A DNA stretch of 64,000 bases from Octopus sinensis. Its lineage: Eukaryota. The notes under the pieces are model-generated. The model was not told where the DNA came from and ran no database searches. It saw only the letters and a program-made list of their open reading frames with translations. The stretch is taken from positions 434,001-498,000 of the forward strand of contig NW_021831284.1 in the NCBI RefSeq assembly GCF_006345805.1, read 5' to 3'. Both the position numbers and the translations under genes were made by a program. Shown in pieces: positions 1 through 56,259 of this stretch (positions within the stretch are counted from its first letter, which is position 1; each line of letters begins with the position of its first letter).

Positions 1-1199
1 GCCTCGTTGTTAAATACAGAGAGGAGCTAAGAATGAATAGAAATAATAAACTGTACTTTGGAAGCGTTCTTTGTAATGAAGTTTTTGGCACCGTTGTAAA
101 GTTTAGAATTGTCCACCATTGTGTGAAAGTCATCAATCAAGTCCCAAGGACATTGATATTCCAAATCCTGCAGCTTACTGTACATCGCGGACAAGTCCAT
201 TGGTTTTTTGATTATATCAAAGTAATTCTTGTATATATTTATTACAAGAGTACCGGTGTTCCGTCCTTTATCGGGTCCAATGGCAAAAAAAATAGTCGGG
301 CTTCCGACATCGTTTGTATTTTGTCGATTAACGGTATAAAAGCCTCTTTAATATTTTGAGGCGAAATTTCTTAAAATTTTATCTTTGAGGACAAATACTG
401 TTTGTCACAAAAACTGGTTTTTGTGGAGTTTTTGGGGCAGGAGTGTGACCTTCCTTCTTTGGAACTTTTAAGGTCGGAAGACTCTCGGGGGTCTCCTCCT
501 TTTTAACTGGAGGTATAATATCGAGTGATGGTGTCCGAGAGGGAGAAGTCTAAATTAGTAAAATTAAATTATTAAACCATTAATTTCCTTTCAAAACCTT
601 CAGAAAACGCTGCAAATTTATGTATATATCCATCGACGGAATTGGAATGGTTATAAATCCTGTTTTCATGCATATTCACAAAATTTAAGGCTTTTTTAAG
701 TTTTTGTGGAGAGTTAATATTTCTTCTCAAAGATTCACATCTAAACATTAGTTTATATTTATATACAATTGATTTTTTCTATATTCCCCCTCATTTATAG
801 AAATATAACTGGCTTTTGGAATTGGCTGCTGAGGGTTAATACTGGGTGGTCGAGGTCGGACGATTTGTACGACTGATTTATTTTCATTGCTAAAAAATTA
901 AATAAAATTGTCAACCCATAATTTCCTTGATAGCTTGACATAACACCAAACTATCACATCCATTACATCTATAAATATGATTTAAGTAGTTTTTCATTTT
1001 TCGGCAATGAGAAGAGCACAAAAGATTGCACTTCCTGGAATGTTCATATGCAGAAATAAACTTATTAAATGTTAGTTATTCAAATATATACTTCTTCTTG
1101 ACGATTATAGAGTCGATTTAGTGAATTTAGTGCCCTTACTTCAGGTCGGCTGGAATCCCTCCTGGGGACAAATTGTCGAGGTGGATCCTGAACTGACAT
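1..1199 (-). CDS. CREBBP: CBP/p300-like histone acetyltransferase, 5' part (TAZ1-like, KIX-like, bromodomain); continues beyond the left edge
   Basis: Manual splicing from ATG 1199 gives a TAZ1-like segment (HSRKCNLLCSSHCRKMKNYLNHIYRC), a KIX-like segment (LNFVNMHENRIYNHSNSVDGYIHKFA) and a bromodomain (NIKEAFIPLIDK...LDPIKDGTP|NYFDIIKKPMDLS...PWDLIDDFHTMVDNSKLYN...ASK|LLSVFNNE). Introns are about 20-31 nt GT-AG. Junctions between TAZ1 and KIX are less certain. Confidence 0.8.
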
Positions 1200-8713: not shown

Positions 8714-10819
8714 TGTCGCAGTAAATAGGGATTTCAGGAAATAGCGATCCGTAGTAAATAGAGCGCATAGTATTCAAATATAAATAAATTAAGCAATTTA
8801 TATGTCTATTTAGTAATAATCATTTTTATTTTTGAAAATGTTTTTATTTTTTGCAAAAAATAATAATTTTTATTTGAGCATGGGATATCTATCGATGTGC
8901 AATTATGAAAGGGATCAGATTATTGATTATCTAGTCCAGGGGTTCTCAACCTTTTGAGCTCAAGGGCCAAATCGATAATTAAGATTAGCTTCGCGGGCCG
9001 CACAAAAATTATTTTATATATTTTTATATTTTCCATTTTACTAAATATTGATTCGCATAAATATGTAGATTCATATATGCATTGTGTGTTATATTTTTGA
9101 ATTTGTCTTGAGGTATTAATTCGTAAAAATTAATAATGGACGCCTTTTTGAACAATGCCGCCAGTTATATATCATGTTGTAAATTAATGAGTTCTAGTTG
9201 AAACTTTGCAGGCGCATCCTTAATTTCCACGCTGAATGGAGTTGTCAATATTTTCATTAAAGGAAGGAATTCTTTAAAATTCTAAAAATTAAATTTATAA
9301 TGTACCCCAAAACGTGCTTCAAATTGATTAATGAAATCACCAATTATGGATATGTTTAACCTTAAGAATGAATAATTAAATTTAAACATTATTAAAAATT
9401 AAAAAAGTTAGTTACTCTAGAGGGGCCGCAAAAAAAATCCTGGGGGCCACATGCGGCCCCGGGGGCCGCATTTGAGAACCGCTGATCTAGTCAATGCGAA
9501 TTTACCGTCAACACTCAGTACCGCCAATGAAATTCGTTCCTTCAGGCTCCGGGCGAGTAAGTTATTCACTTTCCGCCGAATCTTATGTTTAAACGTGGAG
9601 TTGATCATTTTGTCCGATTTTTTACTGTTGAAGAACAAGAACAACTTTATGATTATGTCCGGTTGTGTCACCTGGATACGGGGCATCCAGGTCGAGATAA
9701 ATTATTCAATCATATGAAGAACTTGGCATATGGAATTAGCATAGAACATGTGAATCATGTTCTAAGTGCATGTACAACTTGCATAGCTCGTCGTACGCTC
9801 GCAACCAGGAGACAAATTACTCCAATAATTGCCAAGTTTTCACGAGAAAGGCTGATTATCGATCTTGTGGACCTAAGATATTACAGCGATCAAAATAGTG
9901 GCGAAAAATGGTTGCTGGTGATAATGGACTCGTTTACGAAATACTGTTGGACTTCAGCACTGAAATCAAAGAACTCGGCTGATGTGATACCGAGGATACG
10001 AAGTGTTGTTCTTTCTTTGGGGGAAGTATTCATAATACATACCGACAATGGACTTGAATTCTGCAACTCGCGGATGACGCAGTTGTGCGAAGAATTTGGA
10101 ATTCGCCATGTCAGGGGGAGGGCCCGATGTCCCTGGATACAGGGTCAAGTGGAACGACTTAATCAGACACTCAAATGGATGCTCAGTTCGACGTTATTAA
10201 CCAACGGGAATGGATTTCGTTGGATTGATATCCTCGAAAATATAACATTTACAGCACGACAGGGTCCAAATTAGTTCGACGAATATGTTGATCAATCATG
10301 AGGCCCCTTACGAGATCGATATTAATAGACTAGCTATCGTTGGAAAACTATAAAAATTTTGTTTCGGAATAAACTTCTTTATATCTTAATTTTTGTTCTT
10401 TTATGATTGCAATCGAAAATAGACAACTATTTGCTATTTCAAAAAAAAAGAATTTGAATTACTTTTCCATATTTTCATTTTTGTTTAAATAAAATGAAAT
10501 CGAAACTAAAATACACTCCATAAAGATTTAACGCGAAATTGACTAAATTGTTAATAAAAAGCGTCATTTAAACATTTAAAAAAATTAACAATTCAAACAA
10601 TAAACGAATCTATTCTTAAGCAAATATTTTCATTATTCCTGTACGATTTTAAAGCAGATTTTTTAGTAAGCTATTTATTAATTTATAAAATTATCAAATA
10701 ACGAAAAAATCGTCCTGCACAGTATTTGTCTTTATAGATTTCTCTATTTGGACAATATAAAATTTTATAATTATTTTACTTCGGATCGCTATTTCCTGGT
10801 ATCTCTATTTACTGTAACA
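8714..10819 (+). mobile_element. Ginger2/Tdd-like DNA transposon (integrase-type transposase), degenerate and MITE-interrupted
   Basis: About 45-bp TIRs start with TGT and end with ACA (TGTCGCAGTAAATAGGGATTTCAGGAAATAGCGATCCG vs TGTTACAGTAAATAGAGATACCAGGAAATAGCGATCCG). The 5-bp TSD is ATAAT. ORF 9585-10274 has an HHCC zinc motif and a DDE core (IDLVD, HTDNGLEF, QGQVERLNQTLK). No RT or LTR is present. Confidence 0.85.
8937..9484. mobile_element. hAT (Buster/Charlie-type) non-autonomous element, copy 1
   Basis: Ends CAGGGGTTCTCAA...TTGAGAACCGCTG with 8-bp TSD ATCTAGTC (8929-8936, 9485-9492). Both ends are shared with 47395-47912. Confidence 0.92.
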
Positions 10820-19585: not shown

Positions 19586-22164
19586 ATGATCAAATTTTTC
19601 CGAAAAACAACAAAAAAGTCTAATTTAAAAGACAAACTTCAAACAAGTCCATCCTTAGAACTGTCCAAAGTATAATCACTGAGGATATATGCAGCCAAAT
19701 TGTACAGACCCGGGAAATTGGTTATCCTGGTAATATTTGTGCATGTGCTTATGACCCAACTCTCAAACTGATCGCACTGTTAAGCAACGACCAGACTCTC
19801 CGAATGTACATTCTCAGACTAATTAAAGATATGGGAATGCCTCCTACCGACTCTCCTGCTCAGTCCCCAGCCAAGTTCGCTGGATTGGCTTCATTGAGGG
19901 ACAAGTTTATGCAAACATATACTTTTTAGGGCAAAATAATAGTCATTAATCAGCACATTCTTCTCTACCAATTGACATCCGACAGCCTGTGTCTGCTCAC
20001 TCAGTCTGACTGGTGTGCCTCTGTCATCACAGCAATATGTCTGTTGGCCACCCAGGAATTGGTCATTGCCTTGGAAGGACACGGCAATGCAGAAATGGCC
20101 ATTTTTCGAACAGAGGACATGCAGTGTTGGAAGACAGTCAAATATTGGGAAGATATTCAACCAAAGTCTGTCCTTTGTTGAGTGTAGACTGGGGGACTTT
20201 CACCTCAATCCGCTGACTGTGGAGGACATGGCAGAGAACCCAACCAGGGCGGGGTCAGTTCTGATTGGATTCCGAAGAGGGCTGGTAGTGGAGTGGGATG
20301 TAAGGAGGAGTGCAGTAGTGAGCCATATCAGTACTCAGAGGGTGAGCTAGTGTCTCCATTGTAGGAAATAGAGTGCCTCGGCTGGCACTTTGAGGGGAGG
20401 AAATGGGCGTGTGGACACATGGATGGGACAATCTCGATTTGGGATGTGGAGAGAAGGGAAAGACAGGCAGGGAAAGCAGTGAATATAGTTATGTGGATTG
20501 GTGACCGAGTTGTGTCCGCGGGAGGGCAGTCCGTCACGTTGTATGACCTGCGGACAGATGAGGAGACGGTCATCCACTCGTCTCTCCCTGTCATTGCCTT
20601 ATTCTCAACAGGGGAGGACATTCTTGTGGTGACACGTGAGGAAATGTTCGTTGTGGATGTCCCGAATATGCGGAATGTGTCCCTCGAGTACTTGAACTGC
20701 ATTCACGTGTCTGAAATCACGACGTTTGTGGTCCTCGACTCACTGTCCGTGGAATATATGACGGGACTGAGGGAGATTCTCACGTCAGTACACATTCCCC
20801 TCCAACAAGGCACCGGGGATCTGTTGCTGACGGGGTTGTCTGGTGTCCTCTAGTCGTAGGCACGAGGACGGGTCTATTCGGTTTTGGGGACTGGTGGGGG
20901 ATAAGTGTCTGTCATTGGGGACTATTTCTACCAATCTTTCGGGAGAGGACAGTTGTGCACGTGTGATGAATTCATACGACCCCTGCAGTGACGACCCTCG
21001 GCTGGCTATACGTCGGCTGCTGTATTTCCCACATTCACGTGTTCTGGTGGCCGGAGGGGCTGCGGGTCAGGTTTTTGTGATGAAAGTGGAAAAGTGTGCG
21101 GATGTGGTGAGTGTGTGAGTGAATTGTAGAACTGTCCTCCTTCTGTGGTCGATTTGCATATTTTGCACGAGGATGGGATATTCAGGTGGAAGGGACATAA
21201 GCCAGTGCGAATGAATGTGGGCAAGTCCAACTGGAGAATATACCAAGTCCATCCTCCTGGCTGTGTTGTGGGTGTGGCACTCAATGAGGGCGAGTAGTGT
21301 TAGTGTATAACCAGACTGGTGGTGGCCACACGGCAGGGATATGTGGTGGTCGACACACGCACGGACCAGACAGTCTACTCCCACTCCACGCTCAGCATCC
21401 ACGGTCATTTCTGTGGGTGATGTGATAGACATGCACAAACCCCCCAGTAGTAAACGGCAGTTGAGCATGTTCAAGTCCCTCAGAGAAACCCTCAAGCGTT
21501 GTCGGACAAACACTGCCCAGACAGACACCCGTCAGACAGACTCCCGGCAGACCCAGGACAAGTGGGTGACTGTTGTGTACTTCGCGGAGGAGGGGTTGCC
21601 TCTGTACAGTAGTGGGGAGGTGGAAGGTGGGTATCCGACATTGTGGGTGGGGACTAGTGGGGGCAAGATATACATATACAAGTCGGGGGAGTGTTTCCGA
21701 CTATGTTTGTGTTGTGTGGTGATAGGCAGGGAAGACCATTCAGTTGTCTCACCGGTCACCCATTGTGGACATATCTGTGGGGGATGAGTGCGTGTTGGTG
21801 TGCGCGGAGGAACAGATTCGGGTTGTGTTGTGTTGTACATGCAGATATTGAATATTCCCAATCTTAAAGTGGTCGTCAAGAAGAGGTTGAAGGAGAGGAT
21901 TGTGAGTGCACGGTCGGCACAGTGGAATGGTCGACGGTGGTTAGTCGTGGTGGGATTGGGAGGGCGAGTGAGCATATACTCCATTCCCCACTTGGACAGA
22001 CTAATGGACTGTCAGTGGATTGGGCCAGCCAATATATTGTTGTGTTTGATATTATCAATATAAGGGCACTCCATAATGTATACATCTCTTCGGGGGGCAC
22101 GCTCACGTGTTTGACCTCCCCCTCTCTCCTCCACACAACCTCCATTATACATCCACCTAGTTGA
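19586..22164 (+). CDS. LLGL: Lethal giant larvae (Lgl) polarity protein; about 11 introns of 21-38 nt
   Basis: MIKFFRK...ELSK|TREIGYPGNICACAYDPTLK, LLLTG|HEDGSIRFW, YDPCSDDPRLAI, FRWKGH, SMFKSLRETLKR, LWVGTSGG, IQLSHRSPIV and AEEQIR|ILNIP. No C-terminal R-SNARE coil is present, which argues against tomosyn. Confidence 0.88.
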
Positions 22165-22252
22165 CTATATATTTTGTTGTTTTTCCATTTACTTATTATT
22201 TAAATAGACTAACAAATAGGCATGTTCGGAATAGTGGTTAATCAACAAAATA

Positions 22253-30004: not shown

Positions 30005-32146
30005 CAGGCCTGGCCAACCCAAATCGCATCGCGGGCCACTTTGTCCAAATGAATCCTTTCCGCGGGCCGCATATACATGTACATACTAAGGATAGATATC
30101 AAAACAACACAGATAAGATTTTATTTAGTAAAATAGCATTCAGTCCAATTATACGTATCAATGAGAAATCTGTTTTTCTTTATCTTCACTTAATTTTTTC
30201 AAATCAACTTCACAATTACTAGTTGCACATCTTAATTGGTTTTCTAAGTTTTTATCTGTTAAAGAAGATCTATATCTACTTTTACTAAACTTTAATTTCG
30301 AAAAGAATGATTCACATACGTAAGTAGATCCAAAGGAGCTTACAACTCTTTGTGCAAAAATTCTTAAGTTGGGATATTTTTCTGCAGTCACATATTTGTT
30401 ATAAAAGTCAATTTTGGATATAGTAGGATAAACAAGTCTTAGTTCACTGTTGCACTGTAGGTCAATTATTTCCGTCTGCAAAGTATTTGAAACAATAGAA
30501 ACGTCAACATGAAATGGAGAAGAAAATGTTTCAAACATTTTCTCATATTTTTTTAGTTCCGAGAATCGACTGTCAAATGCTGCAGCAAGATTTTTTATTT
30601 CATCAGCGTACTTGAAGAAATTTTTACAATGGCTGATTTTAAATTGATTTAGCGTTGGAAAATGTTGATCATTTCCATTTCTTATTTGACATTCAAACAA
30701 TGACAATTTCATTCGAAATGCTTTGACTTGATGGCATGCATTAGTAATCAAATTATCCTGTCCTTGTAACTCCTTGTTTAATTGATTAATTTTTTCGGTT
30801 ATATCTACCAAAAAGCACAGATCTAGCATCCATTCTTCATCATTTAATTCAGTTAATGTCATTTTCTTATGCATCATAAAACTTTTGATTTCTTCTCTCA
30901 AGTCGAAAAAACGTTTTAAACATTTTCCGCGACTCAGCCATCTGACATTGGAAAAATACACAAGATCACCATAGTGAGAATATAACTCGTTCAATAATTC
31001 TTTAAACTGGCGATGTTGAAGTGCATGAGAACGAATGAAGTTTATAGTTCTTACAACCACACTCATAACATGGTTCATAGACAACACTTGCGCGCACAAA
31101 TTGTGTTGATGTATCAAGCAGTGTATTACAAATAAATCATTTTTTATGCTTCTTGACTCCATCTCATCCATTATTAGCTTTACAACTCCTTTATTTCTTC
31201 CAATCATAGCCGGCGCCCCATCTGTTGTCAATCCAGCAAGGGTCTCTAAATTCGCTCCATTGTCGGATAAACATTTCATAACAGCTTGGAAAATATCTTC
31301 GCCCTTTGTAGTATCTTTCAAACTGACAAGGTTAAGCATTTCTTGTTTCACTTGAAAAGATTCGGTAACTCCACGAATATATACTACAAGTTGAGACGTG
31401 TCTGATATATCCGTGCATTCGTCAAAGGCCAAAGAATAACTTTTGAAATATTTTATTTGATCACGCAAAGTCACCACAATTTCATTTGAAATGTCATTAA
31501 CCCTGCGACATATGGTTTGACGTGACAAGCTAATGTTTGAAAACTTTTTAGTTTTATCTGGCAAAATGTCTTTCACGACAGCATCCAAACACTCTTTTAC
31601 GAATTCTCCATCCGAAAATGATTTCATTCTCTTTGAAATTATCATTGCAACAGAGTAGCTTGCTTTAACAGTATCAGAAGAAGAGTGTATCGATGAATTT
31701 AATAGTCTTTGCTGATTTCTCAATTCAGATTTAAGCGAATCCAGTTTCCTTGTTTTCAATTCCTTACTAAATTTCGCGTATTCGGAATGCTTTGTTTCAT
31801 AATGTCTTCTTACATTGTACTCTTTCACCACCGATACTTTCTCCTTGCAAATTAAACATGTTGGCTTGGAATTATGCATTATAAAAAGTAATCTTCTTCC
31901 CAATGATTGCTGAATTGCCTGTTTTCTTCAAAAATTTTCCTTTTCTTCATATTGATAACAGCTACAAAAATAGATAAACTTTAAAATTTATTAAACTTAT
32001 AAAATTTATCTTTATTTATTAAACTTAAGAAAAATTTATCTTGAATGTATTTATAGGTTAACTACATACAAAATTTCTCTCGCGGGCCGCACCAAACTCC
32101 ATCGCGGGCCGCATGCGGCCCGCGGGCCTTGGGTTGGCCAGCCCTG
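30005..32146 (-). mobile_element. Full-length hAT (Buster/SPIN/GTF2IRD2-like) DNA transposon
   Basis: 16-bp TIRs CAGG(C/G)CTGGCCAACCC and 8-bp TSD CTCTAAAG (29997-30004, 32147-32154). The 581-aa ORF has a BED-like CLIC...RRHYETKH, FDECTD, TTDGAPAM, HCLIH, RWLS and FGSTYVCES.FS. The probable true ATG is at 31950, with one frameshift at 31883-31887. Confidence 0.95.
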
Positions 32147-36876: not shown

Positions 36877-38640
36877 TTACCTGTATACCACCTTTCGGTA
36901 AGTGTGAAAGCTCTTTTCTGGGTTGCGGAGATTTGTATTCGAAATCAGTGGCCCCCATGAGGCACAAACATATGAGATACATGGTTCGATATACTGTGAG
37001 TAGAGTGTTTTAAGTATAGGGTGATTTCCCATTTTCCATAGACCAGTTAGGCATTTCAGGAGGTTGATTTTCTTTTCACATTTGTTCAGCACATTTGTGA
37101 CATGTTTAGAGAAGTTCATGTGCGTGTCATAAGTTAATCCCAATATCTTTTGCCATTTGCTGAAAGGTAATACTCTTCCCTCCACAACAACTCCGATTGA
37201 AGTTTTCGATAGTCTTTTGGCTGAGGAGTAGAGAGTTGTGACAGATTTTTCTGTGTTGATCGACATCCGGTTTACGTTAAACCACTCAACTAGGTGATCC
37301 AGGTTTTGTTGTAATCTTCCTTTTGCTGTTTGGATGTTCTGGTCCCGTGATGCCAATACAATGTCATCTGCATAGGCCAGAAGCAGATCGTCATCGCCAT
37401 TAGGCGTCGGAATATCGGCCGTAAACAAATTGAATAAGAAAGGTGATAATGGTGAGCCCTGGGGTACACCATTTGGGAATAGACGGGAAATGGAACGAAT
37501 GTTTCCAAAGCATACTCTTCCTCTTCGACTGCTGAGGAAGTTAGTCAACCAGAGCTTGAGGTCTTCAGAGATGTTTGATTGGTGGATTTTCCATGCTAGG
37601 TTTTTTCTAGGCACAGCGTCGAAGGCTTTGTGGATGTCCAGGGAACAAAGTACAGTTTTCTGATGTCTTGGCTTGCACGAAATGCCAGAACGGATAAAGA
37701 TAGTCAAGGAGCTAAGGAAGCTTGCAGTGGAACAATCTTTTTTGAATCCATGTTGGAAAGCCTTGTTGGGAATGCTGTTAATGATTTTTGTGAGGATGAG
37801 TTTTTCCAGAGTTTTTGACATTGAACATAATAGGGAAATTGGCCTGAAGGAGGCCGGGTCTTGTTTTGGTTTTCCACTCTTCAAAATTGGGCGGATGTTC
37901 GCCAATTTCCAAATCGTTGGGATTGAGTTGTAGCTAATAGACCAATTGTAGATTTTTGTGAGAACACTGATTCCCTCATTCCCTATGTTTTTCAGGAGAA
38001 TTATAGGAATGCCGTCGGGACCATGTGAATATGTTACTTTTGTTTGGCGTAGGGATTCCAATATTTCTTTTTCAGTGAAATGAGTTGAATGTTTACTTTT
38101 CAGCTTTCTTAGCGGCGGATTGGATGGGTCAGTCTTCATACGATCCTTGTGGGAGATTTTCGCGTAGTATTTTATTAAGGCATTTAGATCTTTTTGGCTG
38201 AATTCGTCGTCTCCAGGTGTTTCCTCATTAGCCTTCAAAATGTTCCGAATAGATTTCCAGATCTCGGATGTCGACCGATTACGGTTTAGGGACGTAAGTA
38301 CTTTCCTCCATTTCGCTCTTTGAGTTTTGAATTCACTAACTTTTATTTCGTCGTTCAACAGTTTCAAACGGATCCTTGCTTCGGGGGTTCGGATCCCTAC
38401 TTTTTTAAGACGATTTCTTTCCTTGACAAGAGACTTCCTTCCATAGTTACATGTGTAAGAGGCATGTCTTTGAGGAACAGTCTTAGCTCTTGCTTCTAGA
38501 ATGATCTTGTTGACGTAGGCAACAGCCGCGTCAAGAGAGATGAAGTCTTCCAGTTTTATATTTGCGAATTGTTGGTCAGTGAGCAATCGGAATAGTTGCC
38601 AATTTGCCAGATTGTATATGTAGACACGTTTCTTCTTTTT
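36877..38640 (-). mobile_element. jockey/I-group LINE reverse transcriptase, long uninterrupted ORF, truncated at both ends
   Basis: 569-aa ORF: GPDGIP, FRPISLLCSMSKTLEK, QHGFKK, LDIHKAFD, PQGSPLSPFLFN, AYADD and ILGLTYD. Confidence 0.93.
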
Positions 38641-38799
38641 TCTTGTAATTTCTCTTTTGATTTTTAACTTTCTCCCTCTTTTTTCGGCTTTTCCGTTAAT
38701 AAAAATTCATTCATTCATTTCATTCATTTTTAGCAAATTGTTAAAAAAAGAGAGCGAAGAAGAAATTTAATTTCTAGCGCTTAATCAAATTCACACAAG

Positions 38800-52591: not shown

Positions 52592-55500
52592 ATGAAATTC
52601 GAAACAGGTTTTATTAGTTTAAAAATGTATTTAAATTAGTAAATATTGCTAACAATCATATACAAAAAACAGAACTTGAGAAAAAATGTCTAAACCAACT
52701 TGGTAGACACAAAGGCGACCTTCCATCCACACTAATGCTCTGCTCTATATACATGCAAGAAAAGAGATACAACCAGTCATATAACTCATTCATTCTTAGA
52801 TGTATTAACCTCTGTCATTCAGCTTTGGTCTTATTTCCAGACCGGCCAGAAGTCCTCATGTATTTGGGACATGCCTACAAGGCGGTTGGGTCCTTACATT
52901 TTGCAATGGAAGTCCTCTACAAAGTCTACTCCGATCACCCCGAGAACATCCTGGCCGGACATGAACTGGCACAGTGTCACGTTTCACTGGGAAATCTCGA
53001 CACTGCGTTGATGATTTATGCAAATTTAATCAAGCTAAAACCAGTCTATTTGTTGTAGTTATTTTTTTATAGAATTCGATTGAGTTTCAAATAATGATTG
53101 GAAGTCTTCTTAAATTACAAGGCCGGAATGTGGAGGCCAAGGTAGCAGCTGGTCTATGAAGGCTTGAGTGCGATTGCTAATGATTAATGGCGATATTTCA
53201 TTCCCTAACGCTGCAATGCTTTTAGTTTCTCTGAAGTCGCTGGGGGATTTCTCCGAAGATGGATTTGCTGGTTTAATTTTTGCTTTTTTGCGGTTTGGCA
53301 GCCTGGCATTGCCGTAATTTTGTTTTATTGTAGAATTGGCTTATGAAGATTATCAGCAATAGGCCTGATTGTGCAGTGGCTCATTACCATCTGAGTTTTA
53401 TTTATAAGGCAGAGGGGGAGATTTGGCTTACCATCCACCACCTTGAACTTGTCTATATTTAAAGTATTAATATTTAGGCCACTCGTTTGGATTCAAAGTT
53501 TTATGACGCTCAAATGGCCTTGGCGAATGCATTTGGGAGTATAAAACTGACTGATAGGTTGTTTCTCTATTTAAAGACCAAATGTAGAGCATTATCAATA
53601 TACAGCCAAATGATGGGCTATTTCCCGACAAATGTAGAAATATTGGTGAGCATTGGCTCAATTTATATGGAGAAAGGGTATGTCTGTGTAGATATTCCAG
53701 ACTGTATGACATGGCAGTCGACTGCTACAAAAAGGCTGTCGATTTGAACCAATCCAGTGCCGAATATCACGGCTATTTGGGCAATGCTCTCAAGGAAAAG
53801 GGCAAACTTGATGAAGCGGAAGCTGCCTATCAACAATCATTGCTCATAAACCCTAATTATGTGATTCTCTCAACAATCTTGGAAATATAAAAAGAGAAAA
53901 AGGTCAAATCGATTCTGCAGTGGCACTATACAAACATGCTTTGAAGGTTTTGATGGATTTTGGTTGAGTCTGTTTTAGATCAATCCGTTAATGGCCATCG
54001 CACATTCTAATTTGGGGGGAATCTACCACCACATCTGCCGATATAACGAATCACTGGCCCATTATAGTGAAGCACTCCGGTTTCCTCCAATTCTGACTAT
54101 TTCAGTATATATCCCAACTTTGTAGACGCATTGTTAAACCTGGGGAGTCTCTACAAGGATCTCCAAGACGTTGATAGTGCAATTTCGTGTTATAATCGAA
54201 TTACCGCCATCAATCCATACATGCCGGAACCCTACAACCAACTTGGGACAATTTACCGAGTTATTTGTGTTAAAGTAAATTCAGGACAACAACAAAGTCG
54301 GGGAGGCAATGTTCTATTTCAGAAAAGCTCTAAAACTAAGGCCATCCTTTCCAGAGGCATACTACAATTTGTCCCACTGTTGTCTGGTGTGGATATTGGG
54401 TGTTATGTAATAGATTTGTTGTGACTGGGAATTGTATGATGAACGTGTGAAGAATGCAGCCTCATTTGTGAGAGATCAGTTAGGAAGGAATAGATTTGCT
54501 CCAATCCACCCACACCACACCATGTTGTACCCCACACTGACAGGGGAACTGGCGATTCAAATAGCGGAGAAATATGCAATAACATGCACAGAAAAGATCA
54601 AACAACTCAACAAACCACCTTACACATATAATTTGCCTTCTAAAGGTGAACGGATTCGGGTTGGGTATGTCTCTTACGATTTTTGTAACCACCCTACCTC
54701 CCATTTGATGCAAAGCATTCCTGGTCTTCATGACCTGAGTCAATTTGAGGTTTTTGGTTGAAGGGATGAGTAGATTTATTGTTATGCCTTGAATCCGTCA
54801 GACGGGACTTCATTCAGGTCGAAAATAATGGAGGAGGTCGAACATTTTGTGGACCTTTCTGTAATCCAGGACAACGGACAAGTGGCAGATCTAATAAACA
54901 AAGACAATATTCATATTCTAATCAACATAAATGGATATACTAAAGGAGCCCGTAATGAGTTGTTTGCTCTTCGACCAGCGCCAATTCAAGTTGAGAGATG
55001 AGTGGAGTATTCTAGATTATGTGGTTGGGGTATCCTAACACCAGTGGTGCCTCATTCATGGATTATATAGTCCTGGATAATGTCATTGCCCCACTATCCT
55101 TGTCCCATTTGTACACAGAGAAGTTGGCTCATATGCCCAATTCGTTTTTTATAGGAGACCACATGAATGTTTATTTTCATTATTTATTCCAGATGTTTAA
55201 GCACATTATAAACCGACTCAACTTTGATCGAGGAGATGATATATCTGAGAACAGTAATATTATCAATTTTATATCACCATCTTCTCTCTTTGAAATCAAA
55301 AATGTAGTGTTGACAACATTTCGATAGGAATCACCGAACTGTCAGTACACTGAGGACTCCTCTGATATTGAGATATCATATCCCATCCCAAGTGTTCAAG
55401 AACTTGATGATCTGTCCAAGAAGAATGACTTTTATTTATTCGAGAAGGGTGAAAGTGTTGTGTATGGGTGTTCCATTCCTAAGGTATTTGGTGATTGATG

Positions 55501-56259
55501 ATGGCAGGTGTACCCCCGATGTGCCGCTGGGGAGGAGTGCTGTGCTGTTCCTGTATATACATGTCGAAAAATGTATAATTTGCCTGAAAAGTGTGTGGTG
55601 TTTTGCAATTTCAATCAGTTTTATAAGTACGACCCACATACATTTGATATGTGGTGTCGGATCCTCCACGCAGTGCCCAATTCTGTGCTTTGGTTGGTAA
55701 TGTTCCCCCCTGGTGGGCAAGTGAACATTTTTGAATATGCCAAAAAACGTAATATCCCCGAGAATAGAATAATCTTTTCATCCGTAGCTCCCAAAGTAGT
55801 CTATTACTATCACAATATAGGAGGAGCATATCCGTCGTGGACAATTAGCTGATGTGTGTCTTGATACATGTAATTGTAACGGACATACTACTGGAATGGA
55901 TGTTCTCTTCGGGGGAACTCCAATGGTTACTCTAATGGGGGAACACTTGGCTAGCAGAGTCGCTGGCTCTCAATTAACAGCCATTGGGTGTCCTGAGCTG
56001 GTGGCGACTACCCCTGAGGAATATATGGATATTTCTATTCGACTGGGAAATGATCGTTCATTGTATTTTTGTGGTTTTTATTATAAATAGTTTAAATGCA
56101 ACAAAGAAAAAAATTCGTGAAAATCGGTTTTGTACTTCTCTTTTTGATGTGAAGCAATACGTGCTTGATTTTGAGTTTTTGTTGAAAAGAATGATAAATC
56201 AACATATCGAGCATGGACATCCTGCTCATCTTTTAAATCAACATGATGATGCTATTTGA
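52592..56259 (+). CDS. OGT: O-GlcNAc transferase; 18 introns (17 of 23-32 nt, one of 192 nt); needs +1 nt at about 53861
   Basis: TPR array ([23 protein letters not shown]), then [54 protein letters not shown]|[15 protein letters not shown] and [11 protein letters not shown]...[10 protein letters not shown]. Confidence 0.96.

Follow-up and report, generated by a model that had tools for sequence, protein, structure and literature searches.

Detention of intron 4 of OGT is the best-studied case of an enzyme that senses its own product by splicing, and it is regarded as a vertebrate mechanism tied to an ultraconserved element. In mammals the detained intron lies between OGT exons 4 and 5 (Park 2017, PMC5588854; Tan 2020, PMC7261177), and the vertebrate intron carries a silencer and a poison or decoy exon (PMC5588854, PMC7261177, PMC12017769). 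We compared it with the 192-nucleotide (nt) intron 4 (53142-53333, forward strand) of a compact OGT gene in a 64,000-nt stretch of DNA, hereafter the window (positions 434001-498000 of contig NW_021831284.1, C7755), from the Octopus sinensis assembly GCF_006345805.1 (2.72 Gb, 13,516 contigs); the contig most likely belongs to another organism than the octopus, a dicyemid. The two introns share the gene, the ..EAK| junction (the bar marks the intron), phase 0 and flanking exons of 69 and 117 nt. In both cases the intron is the longest of its gene, its retention would lead to an early stop, a strong sequence resembling a 5' splice site lies within it, and OGA is present. They differ in size, at about 2.9-4 kb in vertebrates versus 192 nt in the dicyemid, and in content: the 526-nt silencer and the 397-nt ultraconserved element have no similarity in the dicyemid intron, which could not house a decoy exon of 143-153 nt and has no reading frame like that of mOGT. 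We put at roughly 0.5 the probability that the dicyemid intron stayed long because it is still slowly or alternatively spliced; through the vertebrate intron, OGT holds down the level of its own mRNA.

Two further groups of described systems bear on this locus. In Ashton-Beaucage 2010, as cited by Park 2017 (PMC5588854), Drosophila sxc (OGT) is placed under post-transcriptional control by splicing of a long intron. There too, expression of an invertebrate OGT would hinge on an unusually long intron, which may be another one than EAK|; in contrast to the vertebrate case, what that account describes is a dependence of long introns on the exon junction complex, not a decoy exon, and the size is off from ours by orders of magnitude. 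In the two insects that we mapped, the two long OGT introns were those at EAK| and at IFD|RAV. The detained introns and poison exons of SR proteins, MAT2A and OGA exon 11 share the logic proposed for our case: a gene tunes the amount of its own mRNA through a splicing outcome that is unproductive because it carries a premature stop. What defines those systems is conservation of the intronic sequence together with measured switching between isoforms, whereas the dicyemid case is a proposal from sequence.

The window OGT gene (52592-56259, forward strand), modelled by homology-guided spliced alignment with hand correction, has 19 exons and 18 introns and about 1009 codons, from the ATG at 52592 to the stop at 56257-56259. 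Its product is 42-48% identical to metazoan OGTs in a full-length protein search and contains the catalytic motifs HPHH, FNQ.YK and GHTTGMD. The first exons measure 16, 136, 244 and 69 nt; the 192-nt intron follows, and then exons of 117, 80 and 90 nt. Intron 4 (GTAGCA...TTGTAG, 64 x 3 nt, phase 0) separates exon 4 (53073-53141, ending ..GRNVEAK) from exon 5 (53334-53450, NWLMK...IHHLEL). In the bird OGT locus, coding exons of 37, 181, 244 and 69 nt precede intron 4 and exons of 117 and 80 nt follow it; this intron of 2858 nt, in phase 0 at ..LGRLEEAK|ACYLK.., is the fourth coding intron and the longest of 21. The corresponding series in octopus OGT is 244, 69, [12,216 nt], 117, 80 and 90, with the intron the longest of 20. 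The exon lengths 244/69|117/80, the codon junction and the phase are identical in dicyemid, bird and octopus, and the phase-0 junction between a 69-nt exon ending in ..GRL(E/D)EAK and a 117-nt exon beginning with xCYLK recurs in seven further animals. The 69-nt length of exon 4 is common to bird, octopus, bivalve, annelid, flatworm, insects, ostracod and the species of assembly GCA_961645235.1 (P0054), and the 117-nt length of exon 5 to bird, P0054 species, octopus, bivalve, annelid and flatworm; ..EAK|xCYLK.. runs without insertion in 10 of 10 other OGTs. The intron at 53142-53333 is thus a positional ortholog of vertebrate OGT intron 4. The initial annotation had given a mammalian junction GRLEEAK|ACYLK with the same flanking exons; the bird's fourth intron, set between exons of 69 and 117 nt, bears this out, and an alignment of exon boundaries matched vertebrate intron 4 in position, phase and flank lengths. 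The bird intron carries at its 3' end an open frame of 67 codons that continues into exon 5. This frame resembles the mOGT leader of the human protein, and it fits the identity of the bird intron with mammalian intron 4.

The intron stands out sharply in its own organism. The remaining 17 OGT introns are 23-32 nt long with the donor at 55304 (one becomes 21 nt if the donor at 55307 is taken instead). To these we added 10 introns of TUBB, RPS6, SF3B6 and GOLPH3, all in the window, 41 of PRPF8 and five of OGA, 73 in total; human TUBB, RPS6, SF3B6, GOLPH3, PRPF8 and OGA sequences guided the alignments and served for intron placement only. All 73 measured 21-38 nt: 26-27 nt in TUBB, 25-30 nt in RPS6, 28 and 28 nt in SF3B6, 26 and 29 nt in GOLPH3, 23-38 nt in PRPF8 (C8697, about 264.5 kb, reverse strand; one of the 41 is GC-AG) and 21-25 nt in the OGA catalytic domain (C9499). 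Intron 4 is the sole intron above 38 nt among 74 in seven genes and ranks first of the 18 in OGT, at 192 nt versus a median of 26 nt (7.4 times), as the initial annotation had proposed from OGT itself. Seventy-three mini-introns against one long intron put the share of long introns under about 4% (95% confidence), which fits the mean intron of 38 bp in Dicyema japonicum (PMC6736024) versus the median of ~27 bp in Dicyema sp. (PMC6543705). The 17 OGT introns and the 56 from other genes are like the described dicyemid mini-introns (Ogino 2010; Lu 2019, PMC6736024; Zverkov 2019, PMC6543705) in their length of 21-38 nt, bare GT..YAG ends and conserved positions, whereas OGT intron 4 is 7 times longer and as GC-rich as exons are.

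The dicyemid assignment rests on the composition of the contig. The O. sinensis assembly contains two OGT genes, the compact one in the window and a 44-kb one on C6. The window contig has 36% GC, numerous retroelements and introns of ~26 nt; introns this short are found among animals in dicyemids and myxobolid myxozoans only (PMC13644364), and D. japonicum, a resident of O. sinensis, has a genome of 36.7% GC with 49% repeats (PMC6736024). We treat the contig as most likely dicyemid because its GC content, retroelements and intron length agree with these reports.

We next compared the EAK| intron across bilaterians by placing a further nine OGT genes exactly on the loci that encode them, which gave 11 OGTs in which it could be set against the median of the other introns. 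It measures 2858 nt in the bird (P0002 on L017; median of the others 166 nt, rank 1 of 21), 2365 nt in the P0054 species (108 nt, 1 of 21), 12216 nt in octopus (976 nt, 1 of 20), 2788 nt in the bivalve Mya (342 nt, 2 of 18), 2592 nt in the annelid Ridgeia (383 nt, 1 of 18), 3777 nt in the ostracod Notodromas (470 nt, 1 of 11), 1739 nt in the mayfly Neocloeon (56 nt, 2 of 14), 3340 nt in the fly Bradysia (148 nt, 2 of 10), 477 nt in the flatworm Trichobilharzia (neighbours of 34, 34 and 68 nt; 3 of 7), 192 nt in the dicyemid (26 nt, 1 of 18) and 51 nt in the nematode Heterodera (51 nt, 12 of 28). In 10 of the 11 it ranks first to third and is 7-31 times the median; the combined ranks give a Fisher P of 7e-4 with shared ancestry ignored. 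The mayfly, the flatworm and the P0054 species keep a long EAK| intron even though their other introns are small. Retention of the intron would bring a stop within 1-25 codons in 10 of 10 species. No common sequence, Rfam family (nine other OGT loci searched) or large open reading frame (ORF) was detectable among the orthologous introns. We found no paper in the literature searched on invertebrate conservation of OGT intron detention. In three arthropod OGTs a second very long intron lies at ..KEARIFD|RAV.. (1919 nt in the mayfly, 28,524 nt in Bradysia and 1694 nt in the ostracod), and an 811-residue OGT isoform of Octopus vulgaris (P0139) begins at that junction with MFVF|RAVAAYL.

Short OGT proteins that end at exon 4 are frequent in the protein database. 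A collection of 5.8 billion proteins was queried with the first 163 octopus OGT residues followed by the intron 4 read-through, and the best 120 short proteins (138-300 amino acids) were examined. About 103 of these leave OGT exactly after ..GRL(D/E)EAK, while 11 end after ..YNP (intron 3), a class under-sampled because of its lower scores, and no more than five end after the next three exon ends; the latter comparison is fair because equal scores are expected there within the same length window. Since 90 of 94 ORFs begin at the N-terminus, introns 1-3 had already been removed. The tail starts with Val in 56 cases, as expected for read-through of a phase-0 GTN donor, and otherwise in ~34, as expected for splicing into an alternative exon. 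The 'D' form of the motif occurs in 67 of 84 ORFs and in all seven protostome genes that we mapped. The EAK-ending cases include a Schistosoma japonicum cDNA (C1LKX2) and entries from Paragonimus, thrips, beetles, mosquitoes, crayfish, fishes and a bird; many are transcript assemblies that recur, some clusters having as many as 44 member sequences. From their sequences, most of these ORFs look like intron read-through, and the pattern is supportive rather than conclusive as to exon-4-ended OGT transcripts in other animals. The proposal of an ancient force that keeps this intron long is thereby upheld in part: the length pattern in 10 of 11 bilaterians and the EAK-ending ORFs speak for it, and the intron sequence itself is not conserved. 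For the dicyemid, an 181-residue query spanning the junction retrieved no OGT protein or transcript fragments from the protein collection, in which the best full-length identity was 48%. The intron 4 read-through peptides of the S. japonicum cDNA (P0210) and of Trichobilharzia (L024) start alike (VRRHTSRRGAQRL vs VRRHMSRRGALRF), which suggests that the 5' part of the intron may be conserved between these two schistosomatid genera; the Trichobilharzia intron of 477 nt has 48% GC and a 119-codon open frame.

We then analysed the dicyemid intron itself. Its GC content is 42%, with 41% in the exons, 29.5% in the mini-introns and 24-29% in the intergenic DNA on either side. Full retention reads VAAGL*, with an in-frame TGA at 53157-53159 five codons in, and splicing to 53161, 53168 or 53225 yields A*, CDC* or FL*; all three stops had been listed correctly in the initial annotation. 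Scored with a weight matrix from 67 true mini-introns, the real donor of intron 4 ranks at the 30th percentile among true donors, and the real acceptor at the 60th among true acceptors. The TTTTAG at 53223-53225, the first YAG no closer than 20 nt to the donor, reaches the 19th percentile when set against true sites and the 85th when set against exonic AGs. An internal donor at 53271 (ctgGTTTAATTT) reaches the 85th percentile of the 67 true donors, lies above all 147 exonic GTs of OGT and opens a nested segment of 31 nt resembling a mini-intron (GTTTAA...GGCAG, 53271-53301). Between the 53225 acceptor and this donor lies a hypothetical 45-nt poison or decoy cassette (TTT CTC TGA..., 53226-53270), proposed by analogy with Tan 2020 (PMC7261177). 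This layout is suggestive, as a possible miniature of the two human detained introns around a poison or decoy exon (PMC7261177). The AT-rich 3' end (GTAATTTTGTTTTATTGTAG, 53314-53333) probably holds both the branch point and the real acceptor. All 27 mini-introns of the window use as acceptor the first YAG that lies ~20 nt or more past the donor, and intron 4 bypasses two such YAGs. The bypass, which the initial annotation had seen as contrary to the rule of the other introns, is real, but it would follow from a branch point placed close to the 3' end, as in any long intron so built; AAG acceptors, which had been called poor, are used in about 7 of 40 GT-AG introns of PRPF8.

These features can be joined in the following mechanism. 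The ancestral bilaterian OGT would have had intron 4 after ..GRL(D/E)EAK, and the vertebrate form would be the detained intron with its poison or decoy exon. In the dicyemid, productive splicing would join 53141 to 53334 by way of a branch point within the final ~30 nt, which are AT-rich, and the unproductive outcomes would be retention, use of the YAG at 53225 or pairing with the strong donor at 53271. Each of these would lead to a premature stop within a few codons and would therefore lower OGT output. Following the vertebrate example, we infer that the dicyemid intron may be retained or mis-spliced and that its splicing balance may respond to O-GlcNAc; selection on such a regulated intron is plausible. 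More tentatively, and with the odds rather against it, bilaterians as a whole might share an O-GlcNAc homeostat that acts by regulated detention or poison splicing, older than and independent of the vertebrate ultraconserved silencer, with the 192-nt dicyemid intron as its most reduced version. If that were true, the 192 nt would delimit the minimal needs in cis: a donor on the weak side, a decoy 5' splice site inside the intron, and a branch point and acceptor at its far end.

Several observations weigh against a regulated intron. Searches with blastn revealed no significant similarity of intron 4 to the orthologous introns of bird, octopus and five other species, bivalve, annelid, flatworm and mayfly among them, and none was seen to the vertebrate silencer. 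An intron of 192 nt has no room for a silencer of 526 nt or a decoy exon of 143-153 nt, the sizes in vertebrates, and for Drosophila Park 2017 (PMC5588854) reports the absence of any silencer-like element. The nematode intron of 51 nt is ordinary, which means that the long-intron feature can be lost. Some EAK-ending database entries come from genome annotation, in which gene models may be broken up by a long intron. A donor as strong as 53271 arises in 5.7% of shuffles (P = 0.057) and an acceptor-donor pair in ~2%, with thresholds set post hoc; the decoy exon proposed earlier is suggestive, its strong internal donor being marginal against the shuffles. Within the gene, the coincidence of position by itself amounts to 1 in 18 (5.6%). 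Finally, exon 8 shows an apparent 1-nt deletion or frameshift near 53860 (53855-53865; AATTAT^GTGATTCT, that is AAT TAT / GT / GAT TCT), after ..LLINPNY, and no GT-AG or GC-AG intron there can absorb the change of frame. Either an indel in the assembly or an inactivating mutation of very recent date would explain it, and we favour an assembly error, because every other part of OGT is open and conserved. The earlier account of the gene, right about the 18 introns, the single one of 192 nt and its flanks of 69 and 117 nt, had missed this frameshift. An apparent frameshift in PRPF8 was rejected as such, being a 27-nt GC-AG mini-intron (GCAAATTAAATAACATCAAATTTCTAG); the same explanation fails for OGT exon 8.

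The main rival to a regulated intron is a neutral leftover: an intron among the few percent that did not shrink in dicyemids, through a small insertion or incomplete shrinkage, constitutively spliced, with its match to the vertebrate intron due to coincidence or inertia. We judge this explanation rather unlikely. In its favour, longer introns do exist in dicyemids, the mean in D. japonicum being above the median in Dicyema sp. (PMC6736024, PMC6543705), and a single long intron would fall at this one of 18 sites by chance in 5.6% of cases. The intron has no conserved sequence or structure, its 3' end resembles an ordinary mini-intron with a good acceptor, and it would have had furthest to shrink, since its ancestor was probably longer than any other intron of the gene. 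However, not one of the 73 other introns exceeds 38 nt, the mayfly, the flatworm and the P0054 species have likewise kept EAK| long among small introns, exon-4-ended transcripts are widespread, and 42% GC is unlike the 24-30% of local non-coding DNA.

That the intron instead houses another element, such as a small RNA, an antisense product, or an internal promoter or alternative first exon for a short OGT comparable to vertebrate mOGT, appears improbable. The idea draws on the mOGT leader at the 3' end of vertebrate intron 4 (the bird's 67-codon frame runs into exon 5), on an ATG at codon 4 of the dicyemid exon 5, on a C-box-like ATGATTA and a CTGA ~50 nt apart, and on the antisense strand, which is open in one frame over all 63 codons. 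By our rough estimate an open frame of this length is expected by chance in ~15% over six frames, and no ORF of at least 90 amino acids covers the intron. A leader in the dicyemid intron was rejected: the TAG of the acceptor falls in frame, and this stop prevents anything from reading through into exon 5, and the short isoform of Octopus vulgaris starts at another intron. Rfam searches at E<=10 returned only chance matches for intron 4 and were empty of families here and in nine other OGT loci, a tRNA scan of the intron found none, and the intron forms no stable fold (minimum free energy z = +1.38 sense, +1.02 antisense). The C/D-box-like pair was rejected for want of a canonical C box or Rfam support, and an H/ACA RNA since the intron contains no ACA.

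Very improbable is an artefact of the gene model, namely two or three introns around a 12-nt coding micro-exon (PGIA and/or MDLL), a decaying pseudogene or an assembly error. Three frame-keeping paths exist on paper (53142-53301 with 53314-53333; 53142-53258 with 53271-53333; and a three-intron version), and exon 8 does contain a 1-nt frameshift that no intron resolves. Such micro-exons were rejected, as the acceptors needed (CAG at 53301, AAG at 53258) lie at the 0-4th percentile of true sites, the introns would be 117-160 or only 20 nt long, and none of the 10 other OGTs has an insertion at ..EAK|xCYLK..; moreover, the remaining ~1000 codons are open and conserved and the neighbouring genes intact. 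Insertion of a transposon or repeat was rejected: as the initial annotation had stated, the intron has neither terminal inverted repeats nor a target-site duplication, and no further copy occurs in the 2.72-Gb assembly at E<=10.

OGA, the prerequisite of O-GlcNAc-responsive splicing, is present in the same organism, as judged from sequence homology. A profile search matched OGA (GH84) at C9499:23899-24800, C9766:57931-58832 and C9310:93-994 with identical bit scores and profile ranges, and the three contigs are probably redundant haplotigs of the parasite. When a long intron was sought at the detained sites of mammalian OGA, only the GH84 domain with its five mini-introns aligned to human OGA; the remainder of the alignment was spurious.

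New here are the cross-phylum length pattern of the EAK| intron and the EAK-ending short OGT ORFs in the database. Should they hold, the OGT feedback loop may go back to early bilaterians, by our rough dating over 500 million years ago, and may not depend on the vertebrate sequence element. A natural version of 192 nt would be a very tractable substrate for finding out what makes an intron detainable, and it would allow one to test if, in mini-intron genomes, the few long introns mark regulated splicing.

Beyond the window, contigs C8697, C9499, C9766, C9310 and C8845 (0.2-0.7 Mb) likewise hold compact genes with ~26-nt introns, and together with the window contig they look like sequence of a dicyemid kidney parasite that was not removed from the octopus assembly. 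The host's own copies lie on chromosome-scale contigs (OGT on C6, PRPF8 on C29 and OGA on C14). A lone OGT-like fragment of 38 amino acids at C8845:328865-328981, 74% identical to residues 644-681 of the window OGT and situated beside ~9 kb of N, is probably a pseudogene fragment. Elsewhere in the window, a region at 19600-22200 (forward strand) has 52% GC, versus 36% for the window, and contains beta-propeller or WD-like ORFs with weak Pfam matches (THOC3 and RIG propellers, below the cut-off). Mobile-element ORFs encode an integrase core (rve; 9561-10274, forward strand), a hAT-type transposase with a zinc finger (589 amino acids; 30158-31927, reverse strand) and a reverse transcriptase (609 amino acids; 36877-38706, reverse strand), and a bromodomain exon lies at the left edge of the window (27-347, reverse strand).

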